From positions 1 through 64,000 of the IMG/VR virus record IMGVR_UViG_3300046513_000221: DNA of 64,000 bases. One strand, given 5' to 3'. Shown piece by piece: positions 3,774 to 26,667 of the stretch. The notes under the pieces are model-generated. The model searched no databases. It was not told where the DNA came from and worked only from the letters and a program-made list of their open reading frames with translations. The position numbers and the translations under genes were made by a program. Within the stretch, counting starts at the first letter, position 1; the number at the start of each line of letters is the position of its first letter.

Positions 3774-3799
3774 TTTTCTGTGTTCCCAAATGTGAGTGA

Positions 3800-4445
3800 T
3801 TACAAAAAATAAGAGAGATGGCCCGATGCCGAAGCACCGAGCCTCTCAACTGCTTCCCTTTTCTGGTGGAGTGGGTCGCTATCTTCTTCTCGTCTGTTGC
3901 TACGTTGGATTTTGAGGTACAGCTGTGTCGTGTGTACTGCCGATACTGCCTTTTCGACCGTGTCCAGTCTACGTTTGGGTTCCACAGGCCACCATTTCGC
4001 CTGAATCGTTAAGCACCGCCTCGTGGCGGCTCTCTGGGTGATGTGATGAGCGCGTTTCAGCCCCATCCGGTACTCGCCCGGTACGTTACTGTGCTACGAG
4101 TCATAGGGAGGAAACCATTTGTCCGTGTCCCTACGAAGTTGATCCCTCAGTCCCCGACGGTCTGAAGAATTTTGATGCAAGAAGTGAGGTTGAGGTGGGT
4201 AGCTTAAAGGCTTCTTCTCCGCTCGTGTGAAGGGGTGGAGAGAAAGGACGCCTCCCTCCTACCCGGAGAGTGGATCCCAATTAGGTGCCTCAGCGAATCG
4301 ATAAGCTGACCCACCGAGGCGAGAACGGTTCTCGAACTAGGTTCGATCCCCATTGGACCGGATTAACGGTAACCCTTTCGGGCTGCTTGAGAACGGGGGT
4401 TCCGTGGAATTCCCCGTAGTTGTTAGATGAACCTTTCAGTCCATC
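3800..4445 (-). ncRNA. candidate ~650-nt structured non-coding RNA
   Basis: No credible ORF. Bounded by an ATATATTAT promoter motif (4452-4460) and a terminator (3803-3847). Many inverted repeats, including the long-range pair GGTGGGT-AGCTTA / TAAGCT-g-ACCCACC. Confidence 0.45.
3803..3847 (-). terminator. intrinsic terminator (UUCG loop)
   Basis: Minus strand GAGAGGCTCGGTGC-TTCG-GCATCGGGCCATCTCTC followed by a T-rich tract. Confidence 0.7.
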
Positions 4446-4451
4446 ATCGAT

Positions 4452-4460
4452 ATAATATAT
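4452..4460 (-). promoter_or_regulatory. putative early promoter ATATATTAT
   Basis: Recurrent intergenic 9-mer resembling the phiKZ early consensus TATATTAC. Confidence 0.6.
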
Positions 4461-4485
4461 CAACAAGTGACCTGCAGATACGGTC

Positions 4486-16790: not shown

Positions 16791-17540
16791 TTATGGCGGG
16801 GTGGAACGATAGAACGGTACGCAGAAGGTCGCATCGCGACTGTTGGCACCACGACTCATGATCTTGGCTTCCTTCTCGGACATCCAAACATCCGGCTCAC
16901 GTCCGGCACCTTCCTTATACCACAGTGCCAGCCAGAAGTTACCTTCCGGCGTCTTGGTCACGGCGAAACCGGCGATAGGGACGTCGTCCTCATCGAAGAT
17001 CATCGAGTAGTTGATCGTCGCACTGGCACCGGTAGGATCGGCGGTCAGGACGCTGGTCCATTCCGTCTCGAAGAGTAGAAGGAAGTCCTCGCCGTGGCGT
17101 ACGGCCACCTTCTCCTCGTCGCTGTTGTACTTGTAGAGGACTGACTTGTTCGCCATCGCCCACGTTTCCTTGCCAACGGTGTTCTCAACCGTGTTCTTGC
17201 GATCGGCGTACTTGGGATCTTTCATCATCGCGCCGAGCCAAGCCTGAAGGTTCTCTTCGGTCGCACGCTCACCCTCGTGGTGATCGATGATGTAGTTGGG
17301 CAGATCCTCCCACGCGGCACCGCCGAAGCTGCGCAGGACGCTCTCGGCACGTTGAGCGCGACGCGCCCACTTGTGACGATTCTCCACCAAGCAGGGGATG
17401 CACTCCTTCATCACGCCGACCATCAGCATGGATTCCGGCTTACCGGCGTCGGGGTGAGGGTTGTCGGACATCAGATATCCGCACTTAGGGCAGTGGCCCG
17501 GTTCGACGAATACGCCATTCTCTTTATTTACAGCCTGCAT
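16791..17540 (-). CDS. hypothetical protein with N-terminal CxxC...CxxC zinc finger, 249 aa
   Basis: CPKC and CIPC pairs; GGGAG RBS before MQAVNK. Confidence 0.65.
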   Translation of the reverse strand: MQAVNKENGVFVEPGHCPKCGYLMSDNPHPDAGKPESMLMVGVMKECIPCLVENRHKWARRAQRAESVLRSFGGAAWEDLPNYIIDHHEGERATEENLQAWLGAMMKDPKYADRKNTVENTVGKETWAMANKSVLYKYNSDEEKVAVRHGEDFLLLFETEWTSVLTADPTGASATINYSMIFDEDDVPIAGFAVTKTPEGNFWLALWYKEGAGREPDVWMSEKEAKIMSRGANSRDATFCVPFYRSTPP

Positions 17541-17561
17541 GGTTGCTCCCAAAGTTGAAAA

Positions 17562-17595: not shown

Positions 17596-19767
17596 TTACA
17601 GGGTACGATTTTCCGGAAAGCTAGATGCTGCAGCCTCCAGGAACAAACGCACCGTGGTGTTGATGTACGCCCTGTTCATCGGGCCGGTACGGGCCAGACG
17701 GACGTTGATCGCACGCGGGTCGATGTGCGGCCACGCGTACTCCAGAACGGACAGTGCTTGCTTCACCGTCAGAGCCGACATGGTACGGCTGCGGATCAGC
17801 TCCGCGAGTTCCCAAGGAGGGGTCTCGGAACTGAAGAACACACCGTTCGCCGCCTCCGCAGGTGCCTTCGGAATGAAGGTGTCCGGGAACTTCACACGGT
17901 TCTTGTGCTGTTCGGCGAACAACTCGAAGTCACGCTTGCGGTTCAGGACATCGACCGCTCCGCTGCCGTGGTTACGGGTCTGCAGCAGATTGATGTAGGT
18001 CTCCAGAGCACTGACAGCCAAGGTGTCCTTGGCACGCAGGATGAAGACCGGCTCGTCGCTCGGGATTGCATGCCCGGTGCTGCGGACGTACAGTACGCCG
18101 TCACTGATCCCGTACTTAGGATCCTGCGACACAGGGAACGTCGCCTTCTTGGTACCGTAGGCGGTGTTCTCGATGTAGCGACGAGACAATTCCTTCATGC
18201 GTAGCAGGACAGCCAGCTCGTGATCGTAGTACGACATGTTGTCGCGACTCTGGTCATCGTCATGCTCGCGAGCGTCCTCGATGTACTTCTTGAACGAATC
18301 GTAGTGCGACACGATGTCCTTCAGAGCCTCGATCGCGCCATAGCTGAAGAACAGTGCACCGTCCACCAGCGGCAGCTTATCGTCGAAGTCCTTGCTGATC
18401 ATGGTCCGCAGAGCCTCGATCATGTAGGGATTGCTGTCAGTGAAGCGTTCCGCGATTTGACTCGCTGCGAAGAACGCATCGTCGCGCCACGCCTGTACCT
18501 CGGCGCGAGTGTAGACACGCTGGCCCTTCTGGAGGGCGCTGCCGTCGCGGTAGTCCTGTGCCAGATTTTTGTCCGCCACCTTGTCCACCGAGCGACCGAT
18601 CTCGGCCAAAACGGTACCAACCTTGTCGCGGATGCCCTCGATGGATACCGACTTCAACACCTCGTCCAAGGCGTTGAGAAGTGCCACCTCTGGCGGCTCG
18701 GAGCGGTAGATGCTGGTCGCCTTGGGGAAGCGGCGGCACAACTCGTCCAACATGTAGCTCAGACGGAGGCTAGGGGTGCCAGCACCGCCATTCTCCAACT
18801 GGTTGATGCGCCACTCCATCCACTTGATGCGGTCGCGTGCGCCGGTGACGACGGCCTCGTGTTGCAGGTCGCCGCGCATCAGCATACGTACCATACCGGC
18901 CATCTCGTCGTGGGACAGATGACCAAAGGCCAGTTCCGACAGCTCCGTGGAGTGCAGAGCGGTGCCGCTCTCGGAAACCGGAACCTGTGGTCCCTCCAGC
19001 AGCTTACGACGCAGATCGTCGGCCTCAGCACGAGATGCCTCCAGAGCCTTGTTCAGGCGATCGACTTCCTTCTCCAGAGCGGAACGACCCGGAGGAGCAC
19101 TGCTGACCTTGCTGTCCTTCAAGTTGAACAGCTGACCGAAGCCGGTCCACTTGCCGTCGTTCCAGTGCTCGACGAAGCGCATGTCGTTTGGCGTGCGGCG
19201 GGTGATGCAGTAGTGGCCGGTGACGCCGTCGGCACGGTCGGTCAGGTACGGAGCGCCGGGGTTTACCATGTCCAGAGGGACCAGATGGAAGCCGACGTTC
19301 AGGTGATTGCCAGTGCCCACGTCGAAGCCGACCTGCGTGTCGGTGATCTCGACGAACTTGCCGAAGAACAGGAATGCCTTGCGGAAGTTCTCGATGGGAG
19401 CAACGCTGTTGATGTCCAGCATGGCCTCGACCTCGTACACCGAGAATGCCTTCGAGTACTCGGCGAATTCCTCGTTCGAGTAGCCACGGTTGACCATCTC
19501 GTTATTGAGCAGGACGGTCAGGCCGGAGCGGAAGTCGATCTGCACACCGCGATCGGTTCCGTGGTCCTCGTCGGTGTTCAGGGAGATGGTCACACGACGT
19601 GCCAGCATGTCTTCGAGCAGCATCCACAACATGTCGTAGACGGCATTGTAGGCTTTTGTAGGATCCTTGAGCTGGAGCTCCACCTCGATCGGAGGGTTGA
19701 AGGCGGTGAAGCTTACACGGACGTTCTGACCCTCTTCGTGGGGCAGGATTTTATACGAGAAAAGCAT
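17596..19767 (-). CDS. large mosaic hypothetical protein, ~723 aa
   Basis: Start MLFSYK with TTTGGGAGTA; coiled coil; C-terminal IPSDEPVFILRAKD phage module. Confidence 0.7.
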   Translation of the reverse strand: MLFSYKILPHEEGQNVRVSFTAFNPPIEVELQLKDPTKAYNAVYDMLWMLLEDMLARRVTISLNTDEDHGTDRGVQIDFRSGLTVLLNNEMVNRGYSNEEFAEYSKAFSVYEVEAMLDINSVAPIENFRKAFLFFGKFVEITDTQVGFDVGTGNHLNVGFHLVPLDMVNPGAPYLTDRADGVTGHYCITRRTPNDMRFVEHWNDGKWTGFGQLFNLKDSKVSSAPPGRSALEKEVDRLNKALEASRAEADDLRRKLLEGPQVPVSESGTALHSTELSELAFGHLSHDEMAGMVRMLMRGDLQHEAVVTGARDRIKWMEWRINQLENGGAGTPSLRLSYMLDELCRRFPKATSIYRSEPPEVALLNALDEVLKSVSIEGIRDKVGTVLAEIGRSVDKVADKNLAQDYRDGSALQKGQRVYTRAEVQAWRDDAFFAASQIAERFTDSNPYMIEALRTMISKDFDDKLPLVDGALFFSYGAIEALKDIVSHYDSFKKYIEDAREHDDDQSRDNMSYYDHELAVLLRMKELSRRYIENTAYGTKKATFPVSQDPKYGISDGVLYVRSTGHAIPSDEPVFILRAKDTLAVSALETYINLLQTRNHGSGAVDVLNRKRDFELFAEQHKNRVKFPDTFIPKAPAEAANGVFFSSETPPWELAELIRSRTMSALTVKQALSVLEYAWPHIDPRAINVRLARTGPMNRAYINTTVRLFLEAAASSFPENRTL

Positions 19768-19781
19768 TTGTACTCCCAAAA

Positions 19782-20261
19782 TTATTCGTGATCTTCGTCT
19801 GCCGGTTCCATCTCAACGAGGCGGATACCGTAGTCTTTGTTGTCGCCGTTCATGCCGACAGTCTTGTGGATGAACAGGAGGCGACGGAGGATCTCCACCG
19901 CATCGCCGTTCAGGTTGATGCCGTTCAGCAGCTGGTTGCGGATCTGATCGCCCTCGCGGACGAGACTGGCGCTGTTCTCCTCCAGATGCTCAGGAATCTC
20001 CTTCTCATCGACGATGCGAGGAGCCAGCTCCATACGGAACTTCTCCATCAGCTTGAGCTTCTCCTCGTCGCGGACCTGCCAGATGTGCTCGATCATGGCG
20101 TCCTTACCGCGCAGACCGCCCTCGATCCGCTTGGCCTTGGCGAGGATCCCGGCCTCGTCGCTCTCGTTTGCGACCACATGGATCACGGACGGGAAACCCG
20201 GTGCGGCGCACCAGAACTCCACGCGGTAGTACTCCATCGGCTTACGTGCAAATAAACTCAT
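19782..20261 (-). CDS. hypothetical protein, 159 aa
   Basis: First gene after the 20304 promoter motif. Confidence 0.7.
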   Translation of the reverse strand: MSLFARKPMEYYRVEFWCAAPGFPSVIHVVANESDEAGILAKAKRIEGGLRGKDAMIEHIWQVRDEEKLKLMEKFRMELAPRIVDEKEIPEHLEENSASLVREGDQIRNQLLNGINLNGDAVEILRRLLFIHKTVGMNGDNKDYGIRLVEMEPADEDHE

Positions 20262-20303
20262 AGCTCTACTTCCAATTAAAAAGTCAACGCATAACCCATA
20301 TGA

Positions 20304-20312
20304 ATAATATAT
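20304..20312 (-). promoter_or_regulatory. putative early promoter ATATATTAT
   Basis: Motif copy about 40 nt upstream of the 20261 start. Confidence 0.6.
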
Positions 20313-20336
20313 GAGCTATGCGTCTTTCAGATCGAT

Positions 20337-21509
20337 TTACGCCGCCAGAGCGAACATGTCGTCAACTGGACCCGGCAGCGGTTTGGCGTCCTTCAGGTCG
20401 GTCTTGGTCTTGGTCAGAGGATCATCGACCAGACTGCGAGCACGACCGCGCTGAGAACCCTTGCTGCTGCGGGTCTTGCAACCGCCGCCGACGCGCTTCG
20501 TGAACTTGAAGAAGTCCTCCGGGATGAAGGCAGTCAGGGTCTTCGTCTCGGCGTCATAAACGAAGGATGCATTGATGCCGACTTGTACCTCGTCGAACTT
20601 CTCCAGATCTGGCTCGGAGATATTCGACTGCGCCAGAGTCGAGGACTGTACTGCGCCCTGTGCCGTCAGCTTGAAGCCCTTCGGATGGGCCTTCAGCACC
20701 AACATCTGGTTCTTGTCCAGCTCGACGGAGATGTTGCGACCATTGTTGGCGTCGTCGATGTACAGGGAGTCAGCAATCTCCTTGACCATCTTCGAGCCGA
20801 AGGTCACGGTCAGACGACCGAGATTATCGCCCTTGATCTTGCGGTTGTAGCTATAAAACAGCTTCGCCACGATGCGATGATGGTTCGGATACACCGAGTC
20901 CATCAGGAACTTCACCGGGTCGGCGCGGATCAGAGCGATCTGGTCGCTAAACCACAGGCGCAGCTCTGGGTATTTCAGCTGGTTGACCAGACGCGTGTAG
21001 ATTGCCAGATACTCCTTGCCGGATTGGATGATACGGTATCCGGTGCCACGGGAGCCGTCGTTCGTGAAGACCATCTCATGGATGTCGAAGAACGGATGTT
21101 CAGCCAGCGGTGTCTTGCGAGAGCAGCTGTAGAGCGACTTCATGCCGAAGCCGGTCTGCGTGATCTTCATCGCGCCACCCTTCTTACCCTTGCTCTTGAA
21201 CCACAAAGGGATAACCGGGGCGTAACGCTTACCTTCCTTCAGATCGGGGGCCGGGAAGCGGGTACCGGTGTCCATCTGACCGTGACCGTCAGCGGCCAGA
21301 GTCATGGCCCAGATACGGGTGAAGAGTCCTTCGTTGCCGTTCCCGGCACCGTTGCTCTTGCGCAGCCCCTTCGTCACCAGCTCCAGCGATGGCAGCGCGA
21401 TGCGGGACATCGCTCGGAGGATCGGGTCGTTGCGCGAGATCGTCGGCAGGTTCTTAAAGCGGAAGGTGTCCTCGACGCCTTCGATGGTTGCTTGATTGGT
21501 GTCTTTCAT
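20337..21509 (-). CDS. hypothetical protein with ssrA-like C-terminus (DDMFALAA), 390 aa
   Basis: Long biased ORF; ATGA-coupled to the upstream oxygenase gene. Confidence 0.7.
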   Translation of the reverse strand: MKDTNQATIEGVEDTFRFKNLPTISRNDPILRAMSRIALPSLELVTKGLRKSNGAGNGNEGLFTRIWAMTLAADGHGQMDTGTRFPAPDLKEGKRYAPVIPLWFKSKGKKGGAMKITQTGFGMKSLYSCSRKTPLAEHPFFDIHEMVFTNDGSRGTGYRIIQSGKEYLAIYTRLVNQLKYPELRLWFSDQIALIRADPVKFLMDSVYPNHHRIVAKLFYSYNRKIKGDNLGRLTVTFGSKMVKEIADSLYIDDANNGRNISVELDKNQMLVLKAHPKGFKLTAQGAVQSSTLAQSNISEPDLEKFDEVQVGINASFVYDAETKTLTAFIPEDFFKFTKRVGGGCKTRSSKGSQRGRARSLVDDPLTKTKTDLKDAKPLPGPVDDMFALAA

Positions 21510-22252
21510 TTTTCTTCTTTCTTCATTGGTAGAGTGATGACGCCGGTGAGAGGATTCAGGATCTGGTCGGACTGTCCGCGAAGCGACAGATCGATCTTGC
21601 CCTTGAAGAATTCCTTCTCGTGGTATGCCACCCCCATGAGGTCTCGCAGTGCGGGTAGTTCGTAGGAGAAGAAGCCAGCCCAGTACATCTGGAAGCAGCT
21701 GCTCTCGAACTCCTTCTCGGAGAACGAGTCCTTACCCTTCTTGACAACGCCATGGACGTTGCCGGTGTCGAATATCACATGAGTTCCTCGTCGGAGTGGA
21801 ACCCTTACTCCCGAGAGCGGGAAAAGCAGATCCCACTCCTCGTCATCTTCCATCCAGTGGACGAAGAAAGCCTTGTCGGCGAACAGCTCGTAGCTAGTGT
21901 CTACGTGAAAAAAAGAACCTTCACACGCGTTCAGCGCGGGTTCACTACACTTGTCGTTATCTTCACACAACAGCCCCACCTCCTCCGCCCGTAGGCGGAG
22001 GAGGTTAGTGTAGGGATTTGGGGATGCTATGTGTGACGTGAAGACGTCACCGGTACCGGCCAGTGGGTTGGCCGCGTGAAGTTGGTCGATCCAAGAAGCA
22101 TAGAGCTCCTCGTTAATCGCTGGTGTGTCGATATGAGCGGTAATCACTTTGAGGCTCACATTGCGGGCATTCCCCTTGGGGAGCGCAACGTAGAGTTGAT
22201 TCGCTACATCGACACCCTTTTGTATTCCAGGTATCGCACTACTATCCATCAT
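21506..22252 (-). CDS. putative 2-oxoglutarate/Fe(II)-dependent dioxygenase, 248 aa
   Basis: HVD (HxD) motif followed by LRRGTHVIFDTGNVHG (distal His). The canonical 2OG-binding Arg is not obvious. Confidence 0.55.
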   Translation of the reverse strand: MMDSSAIPGIQKGVDVANQLYVALPKGNARNVSLKVITAHIDTPAINEELYASWIDQLHAANPLAGTGDVFTSHIASPNPYTNLLRLRAEEVGLLCEDNDKCSEPALNACEGSFFHVDTSYELFADKAFFVHWMEDDEEWDLLFPLSGVRVPLRRGTHVIFDTGNVHGVVKKGKDSFSEKEFESSCFQMYWAGFFSYELPALRDLMGVAYHEKEFFKGKIDLSLRGQSDQILNPLTGVITLPMKKEEK

Positions 22253-22259
22253 TCACCTC

Positions 22260-23315
22260 TACACACAAATACTCCCAAATAGTCATCGGTTCGGTGGTCA
22301 CAGCCGTGATCCGTACTGGCATCTAGCTATTCCCTTCGTACTGAAGGAATTCGAAGTCGTGACTATTTCTAAACATGGATCGAATTACCTTGCCTAACGG
22401 TAACTTTTCGATCCTGCGCGTGTAATGATGCACCCGTTGAGTGCATGCCCAACGCATGACGCCGATGTTGAACATCCGTGACGTCATCTCCCGGAGATCC
22501 GGGACCGGAACCATCTTCTACCGACTCGCACCCAAGCGCTCGGTCTCCCACCACGGCCATGCAGCCAACGGGATGGTGAAGACGGGTGTTGTAGACTTCA
22601 CCTTTCGGTGTCGCCTCCTGAAGCAGCTGTTCTACCGCCGCTTTGGTGTTGGTATCGCCGACTTTGATGTCGACTAACGGGAAACCATCCGATACAGCAT
22701 GGACGGAATGGGTGCTACCGTTGAGGGAGGTCGTGACCTCTGCCTCGGGCGCTGCTAAACTAGCGCCTTCTTTTATACCGGAACACACAAAATACCTCTA
22801 CTGAAGCATACTGCAATGATACTCTCGGAGTTAGGCAACGACTTCTTACCGTTCCGTGGTTGCAGGGAAATCCTGCACTTGCGACCGATTCGCTTACACT
22901 TGACTTGGATGCCACACATCCGTTGTTGCCAAGTAGGGAATTCACGGCCTTGTATTTGGCGCTAGCATCTTTCCGGGACACAGCTGGTTCACGTACCTGC
23001 GACGGGTGAGAACGCCCGGTACCTTACGAAAAACCATCACGCCTTGCCCTTCCGGGCTGTATCACGAGTACGGAGACGAACCGGGTCTCACCCCGATTTG
23101 ATCGTCTCCGCGCCTGAAGGATCCTACTCTCCAGACTAGCCCCGTGTTGTTGATGAAACGACATCCCTCTCTTGAGTTCAGCCGTACCTCCACGTCACGC
23201 CATCGCCGGAACTCCGGTTGCGCGTGGAATTGTATGAAGTACCTCCGATTACGGATTAACATCCGATCGTCGAACGAGTCCGTCAGGTATCAGGCCTCCA
23301 ATCGACGACCACCAG
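22260..23315 (-). ncRNA. candidate ~1-kb highly structured non-coding RNA
   Basis: 1-kb gap in a dense gene array with more than 15 hairpins; GAAA and GGAA tetraloops and G-U pairs on the minus strand; long-range complementary segments. Confidence 0.55.
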
Positions 23316-23319
23316 TACT

Positions 23320-23706
23320 CTACAGATCTTGCATAATCTCTGCCATGGTGCGTGATGCACCGACGAAGCACATTGTCTTACCGAAGCTATCATCGTACGT
23401 ATGCTCAGAATCGAGCATACGCTTCCACATGGCGTGATTGTACGCCATAGCGTACTCACCGTAGTAGAAGTCCTGCCGGATGATCACGGTCTTCCAACCG
23501 CGCTTCGATGCGAACTGTGCTGCCGTCACAACCAACTCATCGTCAGATACCTTGCGCGAGACAAGGCCATCAAACGGGAGCAGTACAACCCTGATGGAGC
23601 GGCGACCTACACCGCTCACAATGTACGACGGATGGATATCCAATCCGTACGGACGGCGGGTTTGATCCGCGTCACGTTTCTGTCTCACGATGTGAGGCTG
23701 TTTCAT
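23320..23706 (-). CDS. hypothetical protein (paralog of 28806..29129), 128 aa
   Basis: ASKRGWKTVI..D..YGE.A..YN.AM motif. Confidence 0.7.
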   Translation of the reverse strand: MKQPHIVRQKRDADQTRRPYGLDIHPSYIVSGVGRRSIRVVLLPFDGLVSRKVSDDELVVTAAQFASKRGWKTVIIRQDFYYGEYAMAYNHAMWKRMLDSEHTYDDSFGKTMCFVGASRTMAEIMQDL

Positions 23707-23766
23707 ACTTCTTTTCTCCCAGAGGCTTATGTAGCCACGAACAGGCGGGTCTCCCCGCCCTCAGAA

Positions 23767-24324
23767 TTACTTTTTGAGCCGCTTCAGCTCGTAGAACTGG
23801 CACAGGTCGCTGACGAACTCGTTCTTGGTCGCATCTTCGATGATGTCTTCCAGCAATGCAAAGGTATGATTCACCCGCATTCTTACATCACCCGGTGCCG
23901 TGAACTCGACGTTCTCCTCGTTGAGGACGAAGAACGCTTGTCGGATGGCCGACATCATGCGGAAGATCAACGGCAGAGCCTTGTGCAGCTCGTCGTGGGT
24001 TCCCATGATGCTCTGAACGACCTCGATGTACTTGCGGTCCTGCATGGCAAGCACGTCATCAGCCTTACCCATCAGCTGCTTGTAGATCTCGCGCTGCTCT
24101 ACCGGTACACGTCCCTCAGTGTACTCGGTGTGCATGTGCGCCACGGCGGTCTTGATGACGCCGGAGAAATCAGCCAGTTGGCAGGACTTTGCCGCCACAA
24201 GGGCTTCCAAATGTTGAGCGCGTTTGTTCGCTTCTTCATAGCGTGCCCAGCCTTGATCAGCCGAGAGTTGCAGGGCTGCAATTACACGATGCAGACGGGT
24301 CTCTTCTTCGTTTTTGACTTCCAT
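23767..24324 (-). CDS. coiled-coil hypothetical protein, 185 aa
   Basis: Start moved to MEVKNEE (GGGAG RBS), because the upstream ATG abuts the promoter. Confidence 0.65.
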   Translation of the reverse strand: MEVKNEEETRLHRVIAALQLSADQGWARYEEANKRAQHLEALVAAKSCQLADFSGVIKTAVAHMHTEYTEGRVPVEQREIYKQLMGKADDVLAMQDRKYIEVVQSIMGTHDELHKALPLIFRMMSAIRQAFFVLNEENVEFTAPGDVRMRVNHTFALLEDIIEDATKNEFVSDLCQFYELKRLKK

Positions 24325-24388
24325 GATGCTCCCATAGGTACTAAATTCTTGAGTTTTCGAGTCTCCACTCGGATTTCTCTTCATTTTT

Positions 24389-24397
24389 ATAATATAT
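24389..24397 (-). promoter_or_regulatory. putative early promoter ATATATTAT
   Basis: Motif copy. Confidence 0.6.
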
Positions 24398-24430
24398 TCC
24401 CGGATGCCACGTCAATTTCGTTTTTGACGT

Positions 24431-24709
24431 TTAGGCTGGCACCGGGGCTTTTGCGGAGGCCTTGAAGGTCTTCAACGCTTGTTTCTGCCACTGCCAGAAC
24501 CATTCGCGATCCTCTTGCGAGTACATGCGCTCGTAGTCGGCAGTGGTCTTGTTATACACCATCTCAGCATGCGATGGGGCGGGTTTTTGGGTCTTCTCGC
24601 ATATTCGCTTGATGTTTTGCTTCTTCTCTTGAGCATCTTTCTCGATAGCAGCAGCCAGATCGCAGCCGTCAGCGTAGAAGACGTCTTTGTAGACCTTGAG
24701 TTTCATCAC
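24431..24709 (-). CDS. hypothetical protein, 92 aa
   Basis: AAGGAGAG RBS. Confidence 0.65.
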   Translation of the reverse strand: MMKLKVYKDVFYADGCDLAAAIEKDAQEKKQNIKRICEKTQKPAPSHAEMVYNKTTADYERMYSQEDREWFWQWQKQALKTFKASAKAPVPA

Positions 24710-24714
24710 TCTCC

Positions 24715-25281
24715 TTACACAATGTTGGGGTTGTCTACATGGGCGAAACGCATGTTGCTCGGATGCGGAACGCCCTCGATTGCCACGGTACCGCGACCCT
24801 TGGAACTGAGGTACTTCTCCAGATGGTTGCGACGCACATAGGCGTGGCCGGGAATGCCCGGAGGCAGGGGATCGCCTTCCTTCACGCCGGTCTGGTCAAT
24901 CTCGACAACACCGACGCGACCTGCGGTCAGGATGACCTTCTGGCCCTCGTAGGTACCCATAGCGACAGCGCTGGTCTGCTTGCCACTGATGACGAAGCCG
25001 TCGTGGGCGATCAGGACGTCCTCATCCGTGGTCTCACGGACGAAGAAGAACTTCGGGTTCGAGAAGTTCGTCTCGGTGCGCTCGGAATTCTGGAAATAAC
25101 GAATCCCGGTGATCATCACCTCGACAGTGGCGTCGCGTTCCGGCATCTGCCGCATACGGTCGAACAGGCACAGAATGCCCACGTACTCGTAGCTGACTTT
25201 GCCGTCAACGTTCTCCACCCCGCTCAGTTTCGCAATGACCTTATCCTTCTCGAAACGGTCGGGTTTGGTCGTTACTTTCAT
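24715..25281 (-). CDS. hypothetical protein, 188 aa
   Basis: GGGGAGTA RBS. Confidence 0.7.
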   Translation of the reverse strand: MKVTTKPDRFEKDKVIAKLSGVENVDGKVSYEYVGILCLFDRMRQMPERDATVEVMITGIRYFQNSERTETNFSNPKFFFVRETTDEDVLIAHDGFVISGKQTSAVAMGTYEGQKVILTAGRVGVVEIDQTGVKEGDPLPPGIPGHAYVRRNHLEKYLSSKGRGTVAIEGVPHPSNMRFAHVDNPNIV

Positions 25282-25386
25282 TTTGTACTCCCTTTATGTG
25301 TACTCTTGGAATCCCCTGTTACCCTCGGATCCACTCAGGTTTGTTTACCCATCCCGGCCAATTTCGGGATGGATTACTTCGGAACC

Positions 25387-25659
25387 CTAGTCAGTACTAC
25401 CGGGCCGACTAGGGTGTTTCTGGATCAGTTCCTCGACCAGCTCTTTGAAGGCTTTCTTGTCCTTCGCGAGCAGGTTCCGGAACCGATTACGTAGACTGAA
25501 GGCCTCTTGGCCCCTGATCCACTTGGACTGAAAGTTCTTTCCCGATTTGTCAGTCAGGAAGACGTACAGTTCACCGGCACCGCCATGGACGGAATGATGA
25601 GGCAGCTTGTTCCAAGCACCAGTTTCAAGACGCTCTGCTGCTTTGATCTTGCGACTCAT
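25387..25659 (-). CDS. hypothetical protein, 90 aa
   Basis: ATGA coupling; followed by hairpin CCATCCCG/CGGGATGG. Confidence 0.65.
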   Translation of the reverse strand: MSRKIKAAERLETGAWNKLPHHSVHGGAGELYVFLTDKSGKNFQSKWIRGQEAFSLRNRFRNLLAKDKKAFKELVEELIQKHPSRPGSTD

Positions 25660-25898
25660 TTATTCTCCACTTCGGTCATTTCCTTGATATCGGACATCGA
25701 TACTAGCGTACCGCTGATGTCGAGACGACGGCGGAAGACGCCGAGTACCTTCCCGCTTTGAGGGAAGAAGTAACCACGTCCGCTCTTGTCGATGTCCTGA
25801 TCTCGGAGGTATTTCACGTTCTTTCCGATCAAGGCTTTCGCCTCGACGGAAGTTGTGGGGCGAACGTTAGCCCCGGTAAGTATCCTGCAGTCTGCCAT
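25656..25898 (-). CDS. hypothetical protein, 80 aa
   Basis: Operon spacing. Confidence 0.65.
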   Translation of the reverse strand: MADCRILTGANVRPTTSVEAKALIGKNVKYLRDQDIDKSGRGYFFPQSGKVLGVFRRRLDISGTLVSMSDIKEMTEVENK

Positions 25899-25899
25899 T

Positions 25900-26667
25900 T
25901 CAGGTAACGTTCAGATGATGCACGTTGGCGCGCTTGGTGATGGCCCCGATGTTGTCGAGGGTCATCTGGATCAGCAGCGCGGTATCCGCGTCTCCCTCGT
26001 CGCGCATCTTGTCGAGGTTGACTTGGCTCATGGCCGAGAAGGTGGAGAGCTTCAGGACGCTCATGTTACGGTTCAGCTTCCCCAGCTCCGTGTTCAGGGC
26101 TGGGTCGGCAGAGTGGTCATGAGCGTAGTTGTAGTTCATGCGGGTGTCACGCCACGTATCCGGACGCTTGTAGTCCCAGGCCCGTGCGAAGACGTAACCG
26201 ATGTCATCGGCATCGTCCAGCGAGAAGCCGAAGCCGCCGAGGTTGACCGCGTCGAACGCCTTGCTTTCCTTCTTCCAACGCTGCCAACGCAGGAACGGTC
26301 CCCAGACCTGCTCGTGGCAGGTACCTTCCGGCGCGTAGATCACGAAGTTCTCGTCGATGGTGGCGAAGTTGTGGGTCTTGGTGTAGCCCCGGAACTCCTC
26401 GCTGCCGTCGATCAGTTTATTGATCATTTCCATCTCGTTAGCCGAGGCACCGATGAGCAGGTACTTACGGATTTTGATGGAGCGCTCAGTCAGGGGAGAT
26501 GCGGTCAAGACGAAGCCGCGATCGCTGCCGTGCTGGATGACGCTGACGGACTGGGCTGGGCCGATGTTGGCGACCGCCATCTTGTACTCCTTCAGCTTGT
26601 CCGGCGCGGAGCCGATGCTGTGGATGGTGGCGGAGGCGATATCGGTTTTACGCAGTGGCAAAGACAT
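25900..26667 (-). CDS. hypothetical protein, 255 aa
   Basis: Biased ORF, AAGGGAAA RBS. Confidence 0.7.
   Translation of the reverse strand: MSLPLRKTDIASATIHSIGSAPDKLKEYKMAVANIGPAQSVSVIQHGSDRGFVLTASPLTERSIKIRKYLLIGASANEMEMINKLIDGSEEFRGYTKTHNFATIDENFVIYAPEGTCHEQVWGPFLRWQRWKKESKAFDAVNLGGFGFSLDDADDIGYVFARAWDYKRPDTWRDTRMNYNYAHDHSADPALNTELGKLNRNMSVLKLSTFSAMSQVNLDKMRDEGDADTALLIQMTLDNIGAITKRANVHHLNVT

Follow-up and report, generated by a model that had tools for sequence, protein, structure and literature searches.

A 1-kb intergenic region of a soil jumbo phage with base-pairing conserved in a distant relative, most likely a large structured RNA of an undescribed class

Very few natural RNAs above 500 nt with conserved complex folds are known outside ribosomes, RNase P, and introns. 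The phage-associated examples, GOLLD and ROOL, are large ornate noncoding RNAs that form RNA-only multimers (10.1101/2024.12.08.627333). Both families are represented in Rfam, and GOLLD is frequently found in the neighborhood of tRNA genes in phage or prophage DNA. Other structured RNAs of phages include the self-splicing group I introns of jumbo and T4-like phages, which are common in AR9-like phages, and the long-range structures that couple coat-replicase and coat-lysis translation in the polycistronic RNAs of MS2 and Qbeta. In the jumbo phage phiR1-37, small noncoding and antisense RNAs have been reported by RNA-seq (PMC4848604). Here, we examined a gap in the minus-strand gene array of a 263-kb phiR1-37/AR9-like jumbo phage from rhizosphere metagenomes. 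An earlier note, made from the sequence alone, had proposed the gap to be a densely paired noncoding region and a candidate new large RNA class.

The window analyzed is the first 64 kb (64,000 nt) of IMGVR_UViG_3300046513_000221. The 248-amino-acid (aa) gene (21506-22252, minus strand) and the 128-aa gene (23320-23706, minus strand) are separated by 1,067 nt (22253-23319), which the earlier note had given as 22260-23315. The same gap is present in five independent assemblies and is therefore not an assembly artifact, and the observation that prompted this work is confirmed. It is not the only large gap, as 3774-4485 is a 712-nt ORF-poor stretch. All six frames of the gap carry TAA, TAG, and TGA, which rules out a long ORF created by stop codon recoding. 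A covariance model search against 4,227 Rfam families, which the note had named as a check, returned no match for the whole window at the gathering score, none for 22100-23500 at an E value of ≤10, and none in the gap part of the relative described below. ARAGORN found no tRNA or tmRNA in the 64 kb. A search for repeats and for CRISPR-like or DGR-like arrays gave only short two-copy chance matches, with no repeat families or iterons. No similarity to GenBank phages, near or distant, was found, nor were paralogs found in the window by blastn or nhmmer.

To estimate whether the fold exceeds chance, the folding energy was compared to shuffled sequences, a test that had been proposed beforehand. 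The minus-sense 1-kb fold has a z score of −5.0 or −4.5 in two estimates, the lowest of 21 one-kb windows of this genome (background, −1.92 ± 1.06; minimum, −3.73), whereas the plus sense has a z score of −2.9. The copy in the relative has a z score of only −2.5, marginally better than shuffles, and energy alone is thus moderate evidence that does not settle the matter in either direction. Most of the hairpins listed in the earlier note exist, and several are kept in the relative, including TCCCGG/CCGGGA and GGAGACG/CGTCTCC. The helix AAATAGTC/GACTATTT has two compensatory changes and four breaks. The long-range complements that had been listed (such as GGCAAC/GTTGCC) are not used in the consensus fold, and neither these pairs nor the suggested pseudoknots have support.

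The decisive evidence comes from a relative, L017 (JGI 3300060281), that carries the whole region and aligns with it end to end at about 76% identity. On a minimum free energy (MFE) structure predicted from the window sequence alone, 26 pairs changed on both sides yet remain canonical in L017. The expectation is 7.4 ± 2.6, or 8 to 10 when permutations are restricted to 20- to 80-nt blocks, and 0 of 2,000 permutations reached 26. Only 52 pairs are broken, against 85 to 87 expected. The same procedure on coding DNA of similar divergence gives no such excess (10 versus 9.1, 6 versus 5.6, 17 versus 21.8, 2 versus 1.7, and 3 versus 0.9 expected). RNAalifold gives 321 pairs, 31 of them compensatory. 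Only two lineages are known, so every covariation count, and the term "class" itself, rests on a single divergent pairwise comparison to which R-scape-type statistics cannot be applied. Further homologs were sought in eight scans of viral contigs, two scans of metagenome contigs (a collection that seems not to hold these samples), and two scans of genome contigs, which returned only the source contig or nothing, and the 90% protein clusters hold no further lineage. Several features favor the minus sense: the consensus energy is −337.6 versus −286.2 kcal/mol, there are 49 versus 22 internal G-U pairs, and loop classes are kept or gained (GAAA to GGGA; GGAA; C-UUCG-G in L017). A single-change wobble test does not separate the strands (19 changes to G-U versus 15 to A-C).

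The 5′ domain (22808-23318, minus strand) comprises about 510 nt and about 25 helices and is closed by a terminal helix, 23318-23313/22813-22808. It is 79% identical to L017, with eleven indels of 1, 2, or 4 nt that break every frame, so that no reading frame is conserved. Taken alone, it has 8 compensatory pairs against 2.7 expected (P = 0.0045) and 27 broken pairs against 39 expected (P = 0.0005). A nearly invariant core block (23108-23144; GGGGCUAGUCUGGAGAGUAGGAUCCUUCAGGCGCGG) has one difference in 37 nt between the window and L017 and includes hairpin 23136-23127/23120-23112, with two invariant G-U pairs. A long-range helix spans 22855-23194, with arms at 23194-23182 and 22867-22855, about 320 nt apart. 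In this helix, CGUGG/CCACG becomes CGUGA/UCACG in L017, a clean G-C to A-U exchange, while two further exchanges depend on the alignment.

The 3′ domain (22254-22796, minus strand) comprises about 540 nt, is densely paired, and overlaps an ORF. It has 17 compensatory pairs against 4.3 expected and 18 broken pairs against 44 expected (both 0 of 2,000 permutations). Two complete hairpins at 22723-22767 (GGCGCU/AGCGCC and GAGG..GAGGU/ACCUCCCUC) lie within a 48-nt indel and are lacking in the relative, so they are a dispensable peripheral module. A hairpin inside the ORF (22593-22616) changes from CACC-GAAA-GGUG to CGUC-GGGA-GACG in L017; the helix has three compensatory pairs and the GNRA loop class is kept, while the encoded residues change. 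The hairpin GGAUCGA...UCGAUCC at 22377-22414, which encloses GUUACC/GGUAAU and was the first example in the earlier note, becomes AGACCGA/UCGGUCU in L017, with two compensatory pairs.

Conservation of a reading frame such as 22369-22788 in place of pairings had been set out in the note as grounds for rejecting its proposal, and this condition is half fulfilled. The ORF (22369-22788, minus strand; 139 codons) opens with a GTG within an invariant 31-nt block (22770-22800; CAGUAGAGGUAUUUUGUGUGUUCCGGUAUAA), which also holds a Shine-Dalgarno-like GAGG and a 6-nt spacer. This block is 29 to 30 of 31 identical, the most conserved stretch of the gap, and resembles the phage's strong ribosome-binding context, TTTGGGAGTA-TTT-start. 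The L017 counterpart is open from the same start and has 174 codons, reading into the next gene. The indels are 48, 3, and 3 nt, followed by a 1-nt indel near 22435, after which L017 follows the window's other frame, so that the C-terminal fifth is shifted. Openness is not significant by simulation (P = 0.19 for no new stop; P = 0.13 for such an open stretch in shuffles), and the state of the frame does not settle whether this is a gene. Codon usage is not that of the genome: GC3 is 0.54 (0.49 in L017) against 0.64 to 0.90 in genes, and the log-likelihood ratio (LLR) per codon is −0.25 against +0.31 ± 0.13, below every one of 40 reference genes. The evidence on purifying selection points both ways, with a dN/dS of 0.55, substitutions of 24/24/34 by codon position, and a weak frame-specific BLOSUM signal (z = 2.7, against 0.35 and 0.2 in the other frames and 7.7 for a true gene). 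The ORF product has no Pfam or PHROG family, and a phmmer search of 1.84 billion representative proteins found only the identical sequence; neither a structure prediction nor an atlas search was run for it. "Noncoding" is thus safe only for the 5′ ∼510 nt. A plus-strand ORF of 73 aa called by JGI (22456-22677) is cut to 32 aa in L017 and was rejected.

At the downstream edge, TTTGGGAGTA (22270-22279, minus strand), the phage's recurrent strong ribosome-binding context, is followed by TTT-GTG and a 5-codon mini-ORF whose TGA overlaps the ATG of the 248-aa gene. The window has 9 hits to this motif with up to 1 mismatch, against 1.8 expected; seven are on the minus strand, most of them (five clear cases) 5 to 8 nt upstream of a start codon. 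The mini-ORF length is not kept in L017. A candidate long-range helix (22254-22430) would pair 22430-22417 (CAUCAUUACACGCG) with 22267-22254 (UGUGUGUAGAGGUG) and cover the Shine-Dalgarno sequence of the 248-aa gene. It appears in the RNAalifold consensus with 12 of 13 pairs invariant and hence without covariation, and single-sequence partition functions give other partners; it is a low-confidence inference. The upstream 128-aa gene ends with its own TAG, is 89% identical to P0008 of L017, and has a dN/dS of 0.10 and substitutions of 12/7/38 by codon position. The 248-aa gene, which has its own ribosome-binding site and ATG, is 81% identical to a fragment designated L016, with a dN/dS of 0.17 and substitutions of 24/19/52, and its distant homologs are stand-alone proteins of 223 to 224 aa. 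Neither flanking gene has a known domain; the 128-aa gene has no Pfam or PHROG family.

No minus-strand sigma-70-like promoter or intrinsic terminator lies in the gap, and the only terminator-like hairpins inside it are on the plus strand. The only RNA evidence is a 151-nt contig, of undetermined strand, from a ∼96% relative in one soil metatranscriptome, covering 22398-22542; no further RNA runs are listed, strand-specific or end-mapped data do not exist, and the discrete ∼1-kb transcript that the note had named as a check has not been shown. Near-identical strains differ by 6 changes in 1,067 nt (0.56%, against a pS of 5.5%). However, L015 has no differences at all across 21415-23814, indicating a recombination block, and the local pS is only 1.6%, so this comparison was not used as evidence of constraint.

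The best explanation, which we consider somewhat more likely than not, is that the 1,067 nt encode a large structured RNA of no described family, read in the minus sense like all neighboring genes, with a 5′ domain free of any reading frame and an equally paired 3′ domain overlapping a poorly constrained ORF. The analysis demonstrates that selection has preserved the base-pairing over both domains, whereas it is by inference that the region acts as RNA, that the fold is what matters, and that it is transcribed as part of the polycistronic message. The last inference rests on the abutment of the region to the upstream stop codon and the downstream ribosome-binding site and on the lack of minus-strand promoter-like or terminator-like sites. 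The earlier interpretation is thus supported in part: a conserved secondary structure is present, but the ribozyme or scaffold function that had been suggested was not assayed. The most likely mechanism, proposed with low confidence, is that the fold buries two translation starts, the GUG of the internal ORF and the Shine-Dalgarno sequence of the 248-aa gene. Ribosomes that get onto the internal ORF would then melt the 3′ domain and open the downstream start, which would explain why the ORF is kept open while its amino acid sequence drifts. The 5′ domain would set whether this happens or would have an independent role after processing.

Alternatively, the RNA may be a stand-alone noncoding RNA that is cut out of, or separately transcribed from, the gene array and acts in trans, like GOLLD or ROOL, with an incidental ORF. 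This is possible but tentative. Its size, number of conserved helices, nearly invariant 37-nt core, GNRA and UUCG loops, and dispensable peripheral module are typical of ornate RNAs, and the 5′ domain is closed by its own helix. However, the region lacks promoter-like and terminator-like signals of its own on the minus strand, abuts both neighboring genes (to within 1 to 2 nt at the 5′ end), and overlaps the ribosome-binding site of the next gene at the 3′ end; it also has no similarity to any Rfam family. In the most far-reaching version, equally tentative, a new class of giant (about 1 kb) ornate RNA, specific to uracil-DNA-type jumbo phages of soil bacteria, would be released from the polycistronic transcript to work as a self-assembling architecture, a ribozyme, or a decoy against host RNA-targeting or nuclease defenses, and the ORF would serve only as a ribosome-driven switch or be incidental. 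Less likely, but not excluded, is an ordinary mRNA in which a fast-evolving small protein (139 to 174 aa, perhaps a host-interaction or counter-defense protein) is the functional product behind a long structured 5′ leader, and the structure only stabilizes or tunes the message. The shared GTG behind a well-spaced GAGG, the three indels in multiples of three, the BLOSUM signal, a dN/dS below 1, and gene calls in two Logan assemblies are consistent with this view. The codon usage, substitution pattern, shifted tail, differing ORF lengths, and lack of homologs are not, and compensatory pairs are densest inside the ORF and override amino acid identity. Moreover, a conserved 510-nt leader would itself be a large structured RNA.

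Two further explanations are very unlikely. A DNA-level element (a replication origin, packaging site, or hairpin promoters) could keep inverted repeats as cruciforms or homogenize them by template-switch mutation in quasi-palindromes. Compensatory change in local inverted repeats is strand symmetric, the plus-sense fold also shows an excess (20 versus 6.4), and the wobble test did not distinguish the strands. However, the about 45 helices spread over 1 kb carry many G-U pairs that would be mismatches in DNA (43 in the window's MFE structure and 49 internal ones in the two-sequence consensus), the energy difference between the strands is large, tetraloop classes are kept in one sense only, one compensated helix has arms 320 nt apart, and there is no GC-skew switch here. 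The region could also belong to a known RNA family missed by covariance models, such as a divergent group I intron, or be a decayed gene remnant with no function. Rfam's intron models can miss divergent introns, and the phage is related to AR9 and phiR1-37. Yet there is no Rfam match at an E value of ≤10 in either lineage, the flanks are two complete genes kept as separate genes in the relative, and no endonuclease or reverse transcriptase is present. A neutral remnant would not keep 76 to 79% identity with 26 to 31 compensated pairs when synonymous sites of the neighboring genes have a dS of about 0.7.

A further class of large RNA, unrelated in sequence to GOLLD and ROOL and located in a jumbo phage lineage whose neighboring proteins have no known domains, would widen a short list whose phage-associated members build unprecedented RNA-only assemblies. 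The region also gives a defined 1,067-nt construct, with a natural variant about 76% identical, for probing, cryo-EM, and translation-coupling tests, and shows that gaps in jumbo phage gene arrays can be selected RNA rather than unannotated or decayed genes.

Compared with the described systems, the locus has partial counterparts. The closest cultured relative, phiR1-37, also expresses unannotated RNAs, including one from a region between genes, but those examined are about 100 to 400 nt and mostly antisense, they have no reported conserved structure, there is no sequence similarity to the region, and the flanking genes are absent from phiR1-37. Like group I introns, the region is a conserved multihelix RNA with GNRA loops inside a phage gene array, but it interrupts no gene, matches no intron model (group I or group II), and encodes no homing endonuclease; no recognizable P1-P10 scheme was sought or found. 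As in MS2 and Qbeta, translation of an upstream reading frame would melt a helix that covers a downstream start, with selection acting on the pairing and on an open frame rather than on the peptide sequence. However, those are short operators in RNA phage genomes, whereas here the structured region is about 1 kb in a double-stranded DNA jumbo phage, its 510-nt 5′ domain has no counterpart in them, and the critical helix is unsupported by covariation. With GOLLD and ROOL, the region shares carriage by a phage, a length of hundreds of nucleotides up to about 1 kb, many conserved helices with covariation, conserved unpaired or core blocks, variable peripheral hairpins, and a function not deducible from the neighboring genes. 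It differs from them in matching neither covariance model and in lacking nearby tRNA genes, and multimer formation was not examined. Its host is a soil jumbo myovirus of the phiR1-37/AR9 type, and it sits wedged inside a codirectional gene array, with its 3′ half overlapping an ORF and the ribosome-binding site of the next gene.

The stretch analyzed is the first 64 kb of a 263,413-bp IMG/VR contig from a rhizosphere metagenome, so that its coordinates coincide with those of the contig. It encodes split multisubunit RNA polymerase pieces, a split family-B DNA polymerase, a tail sheath protein, and a major head protein that is 46% identical to that of Yersinia phage phiR1-37 and 36% identical to that of Bacillus phage AR9/PBS1, and the element therefore resides in a jumbo myovirus of that lineage. 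Genes from position 1 to about 47.5 kb lie on the minus strand. None of the nine proteins tested in the neighborhood of the element (17596-26667) has a Pfam or PHROG family, and the 248-aa protein encoded downstream has only three relatives among 5.8 billion clusters, two of them in non-syntenic contexts of apparently cellular or other phage origin.

The 248-aa gene (21506-22252) and the 128-aa gene (23320-23706) are separated by 1,067 nt, and the same gap is present in five independent assemblies. The observation in the earlier note, that a gap of about 1 kb in a packed gene array is densely self-complementary, is confirmed. No frame is open across the gap in any genetic code, as TAA, TAG, and TGA occur in all six frames. 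The gap contains no repeat families and no tRNA or tmRNA genes, it has no similarity to 50,697 GenBank phage records, and the covariance-model search that the note had asked for returned no Rfam family, even at E≤10. Folding energy relative to shuffled sequence had likewise been named in advance as a point on which the RNA reading could fail. The minus-sense RNA folds at z = -5.0 or, in a second estimate, -4.5, whereas 20 coding windows of 1 kb from the same genome give -1.92 ± 1.06 with a minimum of -3.73; the plus sense gives z = -2.9. In 300-nt windows the gap sits steadily at z of -2 to -3.5, but some coding windows match that. The sequence is thus unusually self-complementary but, by energy alone, only moderately so. 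A second ORF-poor gap of 712 nt lies between minus-strand genes at 3774-4485 and has a minus-sense fold z of -3.2, GNRA-capped hairpins, and, near its 3′ end, a textbook intrinsic terminator (a GC-rich stem with a UUCG loop followed by a U run). It shows no sequence similarity to the element at 22.3-23.3 kb and may be another non-coding RNA with its own terminator.

To search for informative comparisons, relatives carrying the gap were collected. Near-identical strains (98.6 to 100%) carry it with 0 to 6 substitutions and no indels. This low divergence cannot be read as constraint, because one strain (contig L015) has no differences at all from 21415 to 23814, a 2.4-kb block that spans the element, yet is about 2% different over the rest of the contig, which indicates recent recombination. 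Divergence between co-occurring strains is mosaic more generally, with synonymous divergence ranging from 0 to 12% per gene (compared over 16.5-32 kb with strain contig L003). The useful relative came from JGI sample 3300060281, in which contig L016 carries homologs of the 248-aa protein (81% identity), a 390-aa protein (47%), and a 727-aa protein (74%), and contig L017 carries the 128-aa homolog (89%) followed by about 1,080 nt that align with the whole gap and run into the start of the 248-aa gene. Identity to L017 is 85% in the 128-aa gene, 79% in the 5′ part of the gap, 74% in the ORF at 22369-22788, 71% in the last 115 nt, and 66% in the next gene upstream, with blocks above 90% alternating with patches near 60%.

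To test whether base pairing has been conserved, the minimum-energy fold was predicted from the window sequence alone, so that the relative had no influence on it, and the effect of the substitutions in L017 on the 351 predicted pairs was examined. In total, 26 pairs changed on both sides and still form a standard pair, compared to 7.4 ± 2.6 expected when the letters of the relative are permuted among positions with the same window base. With permutations confined to blocks of 20, 40, or 80 nt, which keeps the clustering of substitutions, the expectation is 8 to 10, and none of 2,000 permutations reached 26. Broken pairs number 52, against 85 to 87 expected. Both halves are significant separately, with 8 compensatory pairs against 2.7 expected in the 5′ part and 17 against 4.3 in the 3′ part, where broken pairs number 18 against 44. 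The identical procedure gave no excess on coding DNA of comparable divergence: 10 versus 9.1 and 6 versus 5.6 in the 727-aa gene, 17 versus 21.8 in the 390-aa gene, 2 versus 1.7 in the 248-aa gene, and 3 versus 0.9 in the 128-aa gene. RNAalifold, applied to the window, L003, and L017, gave 321 pairs, of which 217 are invariant, 27 changed compatibly on one side, 31 are compensatory, and 46 are broken or gapped; 15 of the last group belong to two complete hairpins that the relative simply lacks. Among the clean examples, GGUCGUCGA/UCGACGAUC becomes GGUAGAGGG/UCCCCUACC, AAUCGGG/CCCGGUU becomes UGCGGGA/UCCCGUA, ACCGAGCGC/GCGAGUCGGU becomes GUCGCUCAC/GUGAGGCGGC, GGAUCGA/UCGAUCC becomes AGACCGA/UCGGUCU, and, in a helix whose arms are 320 nt apart, CGUGG/CCACG becomes CGUGA/UCACG.

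Most measures that separate the two strands favor the minus sense, which is also the sense of all neighboring genes. The consensus energy is -337.6 versus -286.2 kcal/mol, internal G-U pairs number 49 versus 22, and the fold z-scores differ in the same direction. Single one-sided changes do not discriminate (19 go to G-U and 15 to A-C), and the relative's own fold has a z of only -2.5, which we regard as a weakness. Stable loop classes appear in the minus sense only: CACC-GAAA-GGUG becomes CGUC-GGGA-GACG, which is GNRA in both, and there are also GCCC-GGAA-GGGC and a C-UUCG-G in the relative.

The 5′ domain (23318-22808) is closed by a terminal helix and contains about 25 helices, three of them long-range, as well as a 37-nt block with a single difference (23144-23108). 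Eleven indels of 1, 2, or 4 nt exclude any conserved frame in this domain. A 31-nt invariant block follows (22800-22770), which holds GAGG, a U-rich spacer, and the GUG of the ORF. The 3′ domain (22796-22254) is as densely paired as the 5′ domain and ends at the ribosome-binding region of the 248-aa gene. The structured region may extend into that gene, because a perfect 12-bp GC-rich hairpin with a UACG loop (ACCUCCUCCGCC-UACG-GGCGGAGGAGGU; 21978-22005, minus sense), which encodes LLRLRAEE, is identical to L016 at 27 of its 28 nt although the gene is only about 81% identical; the 186 nt between L017 and L016 could not be compared. The 300-nt window around this hairpin has the lowest fold z of the neighborhood, -7.7.

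The note had also stated that homologs conserving a reading frame, such as 22369-22788, rather than pairings would count against an RNA, and the evidence on this ORF points in both directions. It is open in both lineages from the same start, with 139 codons in the window and 174 in the relative, and its indels are 48, 3, and 3 nt. Its start context resembles the recurrent motif TTTGGGAGTA-TTT-start, which looks like the strong ribosome-binding context of this phage: the motif TTTGGGAGTA occurs 9 times with up to 1 mismatch against 1.8 expected, and seven copies are on the minus strand (7798, 8599, 17544, 19771, 22270, 26905, and 29133), most of them (five clear cases) 5 to 8 nt before a start codon. 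The motif also shows that the mechanical TTG starts of ORFs 16791-17552 and 17596-19779 lie inside it and that the true starts are a few codons downstream, for example, MLFSYK as in L016. The frame of the 139-codon ORF shows amino acid conservation that the other two frames lack (z of 2.7 against 0.35 and 0.2), although a true gene gives 7.7.

Other properties of the ORF are not those of a typical gene. Genes of this phage have a GC3 of 0.64 to 0.90 and a codon log-likelihood of +0.31 ± 0.13 per codon, whereas every ORF in the gap scores at or below zero on the latter measure, and every minus-strand one clearly below. The 139-codon ORF has a GC3 of 0.54 and a log-likelihood of -0.25, codon usage is atypical in both lineages, and a phmmer search against 1.84 billion representative proteins found only the ORF itself. 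Its dN/dS is 0.55, with substitutions spread 24/24/34 over the codon positions, whereas the flanking genes give 0.10 and 0.17 with a strong third-position excess. A 1-nt indel shifts the last fifth, so that the two tails are unrelated and differ in length. Simulations show that neither the open stretch (P = 0.13) nor its survival in the relative (P = 0.19) is remarkable, the three in-frame indels coincide with a whole two-hairpin module and two hairpin loops, and compensated helices inside the ORF change the encoded residues. Translation of the frame is possible but unproven, and we conclude that RNA-level selection dominates here. A terminator-like hairpin with a T-rich tail on the plus strand (22747-22768) is the reverse complement of the GGCGCU/AGCGCC hairpin and follows a plus-strand ORF of 73 to 78 aa called by JGI; both the hairpin and the full ORF are absent from L017, and an antisense gene is therefore unlikely.

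The analysis itself demonstrates conserved pairing over both domains, whereas co-transcription with the gene array is an inference, based on the absence of a minus-strand sigma-70-like promoter or intrinsic terminator in the gap and on the contact of the element with both genes. RNA evidence is limited to one soil metatranscriptome, which holds 151-nt contigs of a 93 to 97% relative on 22398-22542 and on 21945-22095; these carry no strand information, DNA carry-over is possible, and no other RNA run was listed. As a mechanism, we tentatively propose a ribosome-driven gate. The consensus fold pairs the start region of the ORF with downstream sequence, and it also pairs an invariant CAUCAUUACACGCG (22430-22417) with UGUGUGUAGAGGUG (22267-22254), the Shine-Dalgarno region of the 248-aa gene. 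In both lineages the ORF stays open through the first arm, so that ribosomes on it would free the downstream start, which would account for an open but drifting frame. However, both arms are invariant and thus offer no covariation, and single-sequence ensembles give other partners. A five-codon mini-ORF (GTG TGT AGA GGT GAA TGA; 22249-22266, minus sense) lies behind the strong ribosome-binding motif, and its TGA overlaps the ATG of the 248-aa gene (ATGA) in a classic termination-reinitiation layout, but a 2-nt insertion in L017 changes it into a 19-codon frame, so it is not conserved as such.

A gate also does not explain why 510 nt of ORF-free conserved fold lie upstream, and a trans-acting, processed RNA remains about as likely. 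The note's interpretation of the gap as a new large non-coding RNA is partly supported: the gap is a conserved large structured RNA region of no known family, seen in two lineages only, and its 3′ half may also be translated. That a conserved RNA fold is under selection is very likely, and the preferred explanation taken as a whole is slightly more likely than not, whereas a stand-alone new class of ornate RNA is a possibility that we consider less likely than not.

Group I or II introns are excluded by context and by the models, although divergent introns can escape the latter. The nearest cultured phage, phiR1-37, has only short, mostly antisense unannotated RNAs (PMC4848604) and lacks the flanking genes. 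The closest kind is the large ornate phage-associated RNAs GOLLD and ROOL, which form RNA-only multimers (10.1101/2024.12.08.627333). The element shares their size, complexity, and phage carriage, but it satisfies none of the membership criteria examined, with no model match and no tRNA neighborhood, and it also differs in sitting inside an operon and overlapping an ORF.
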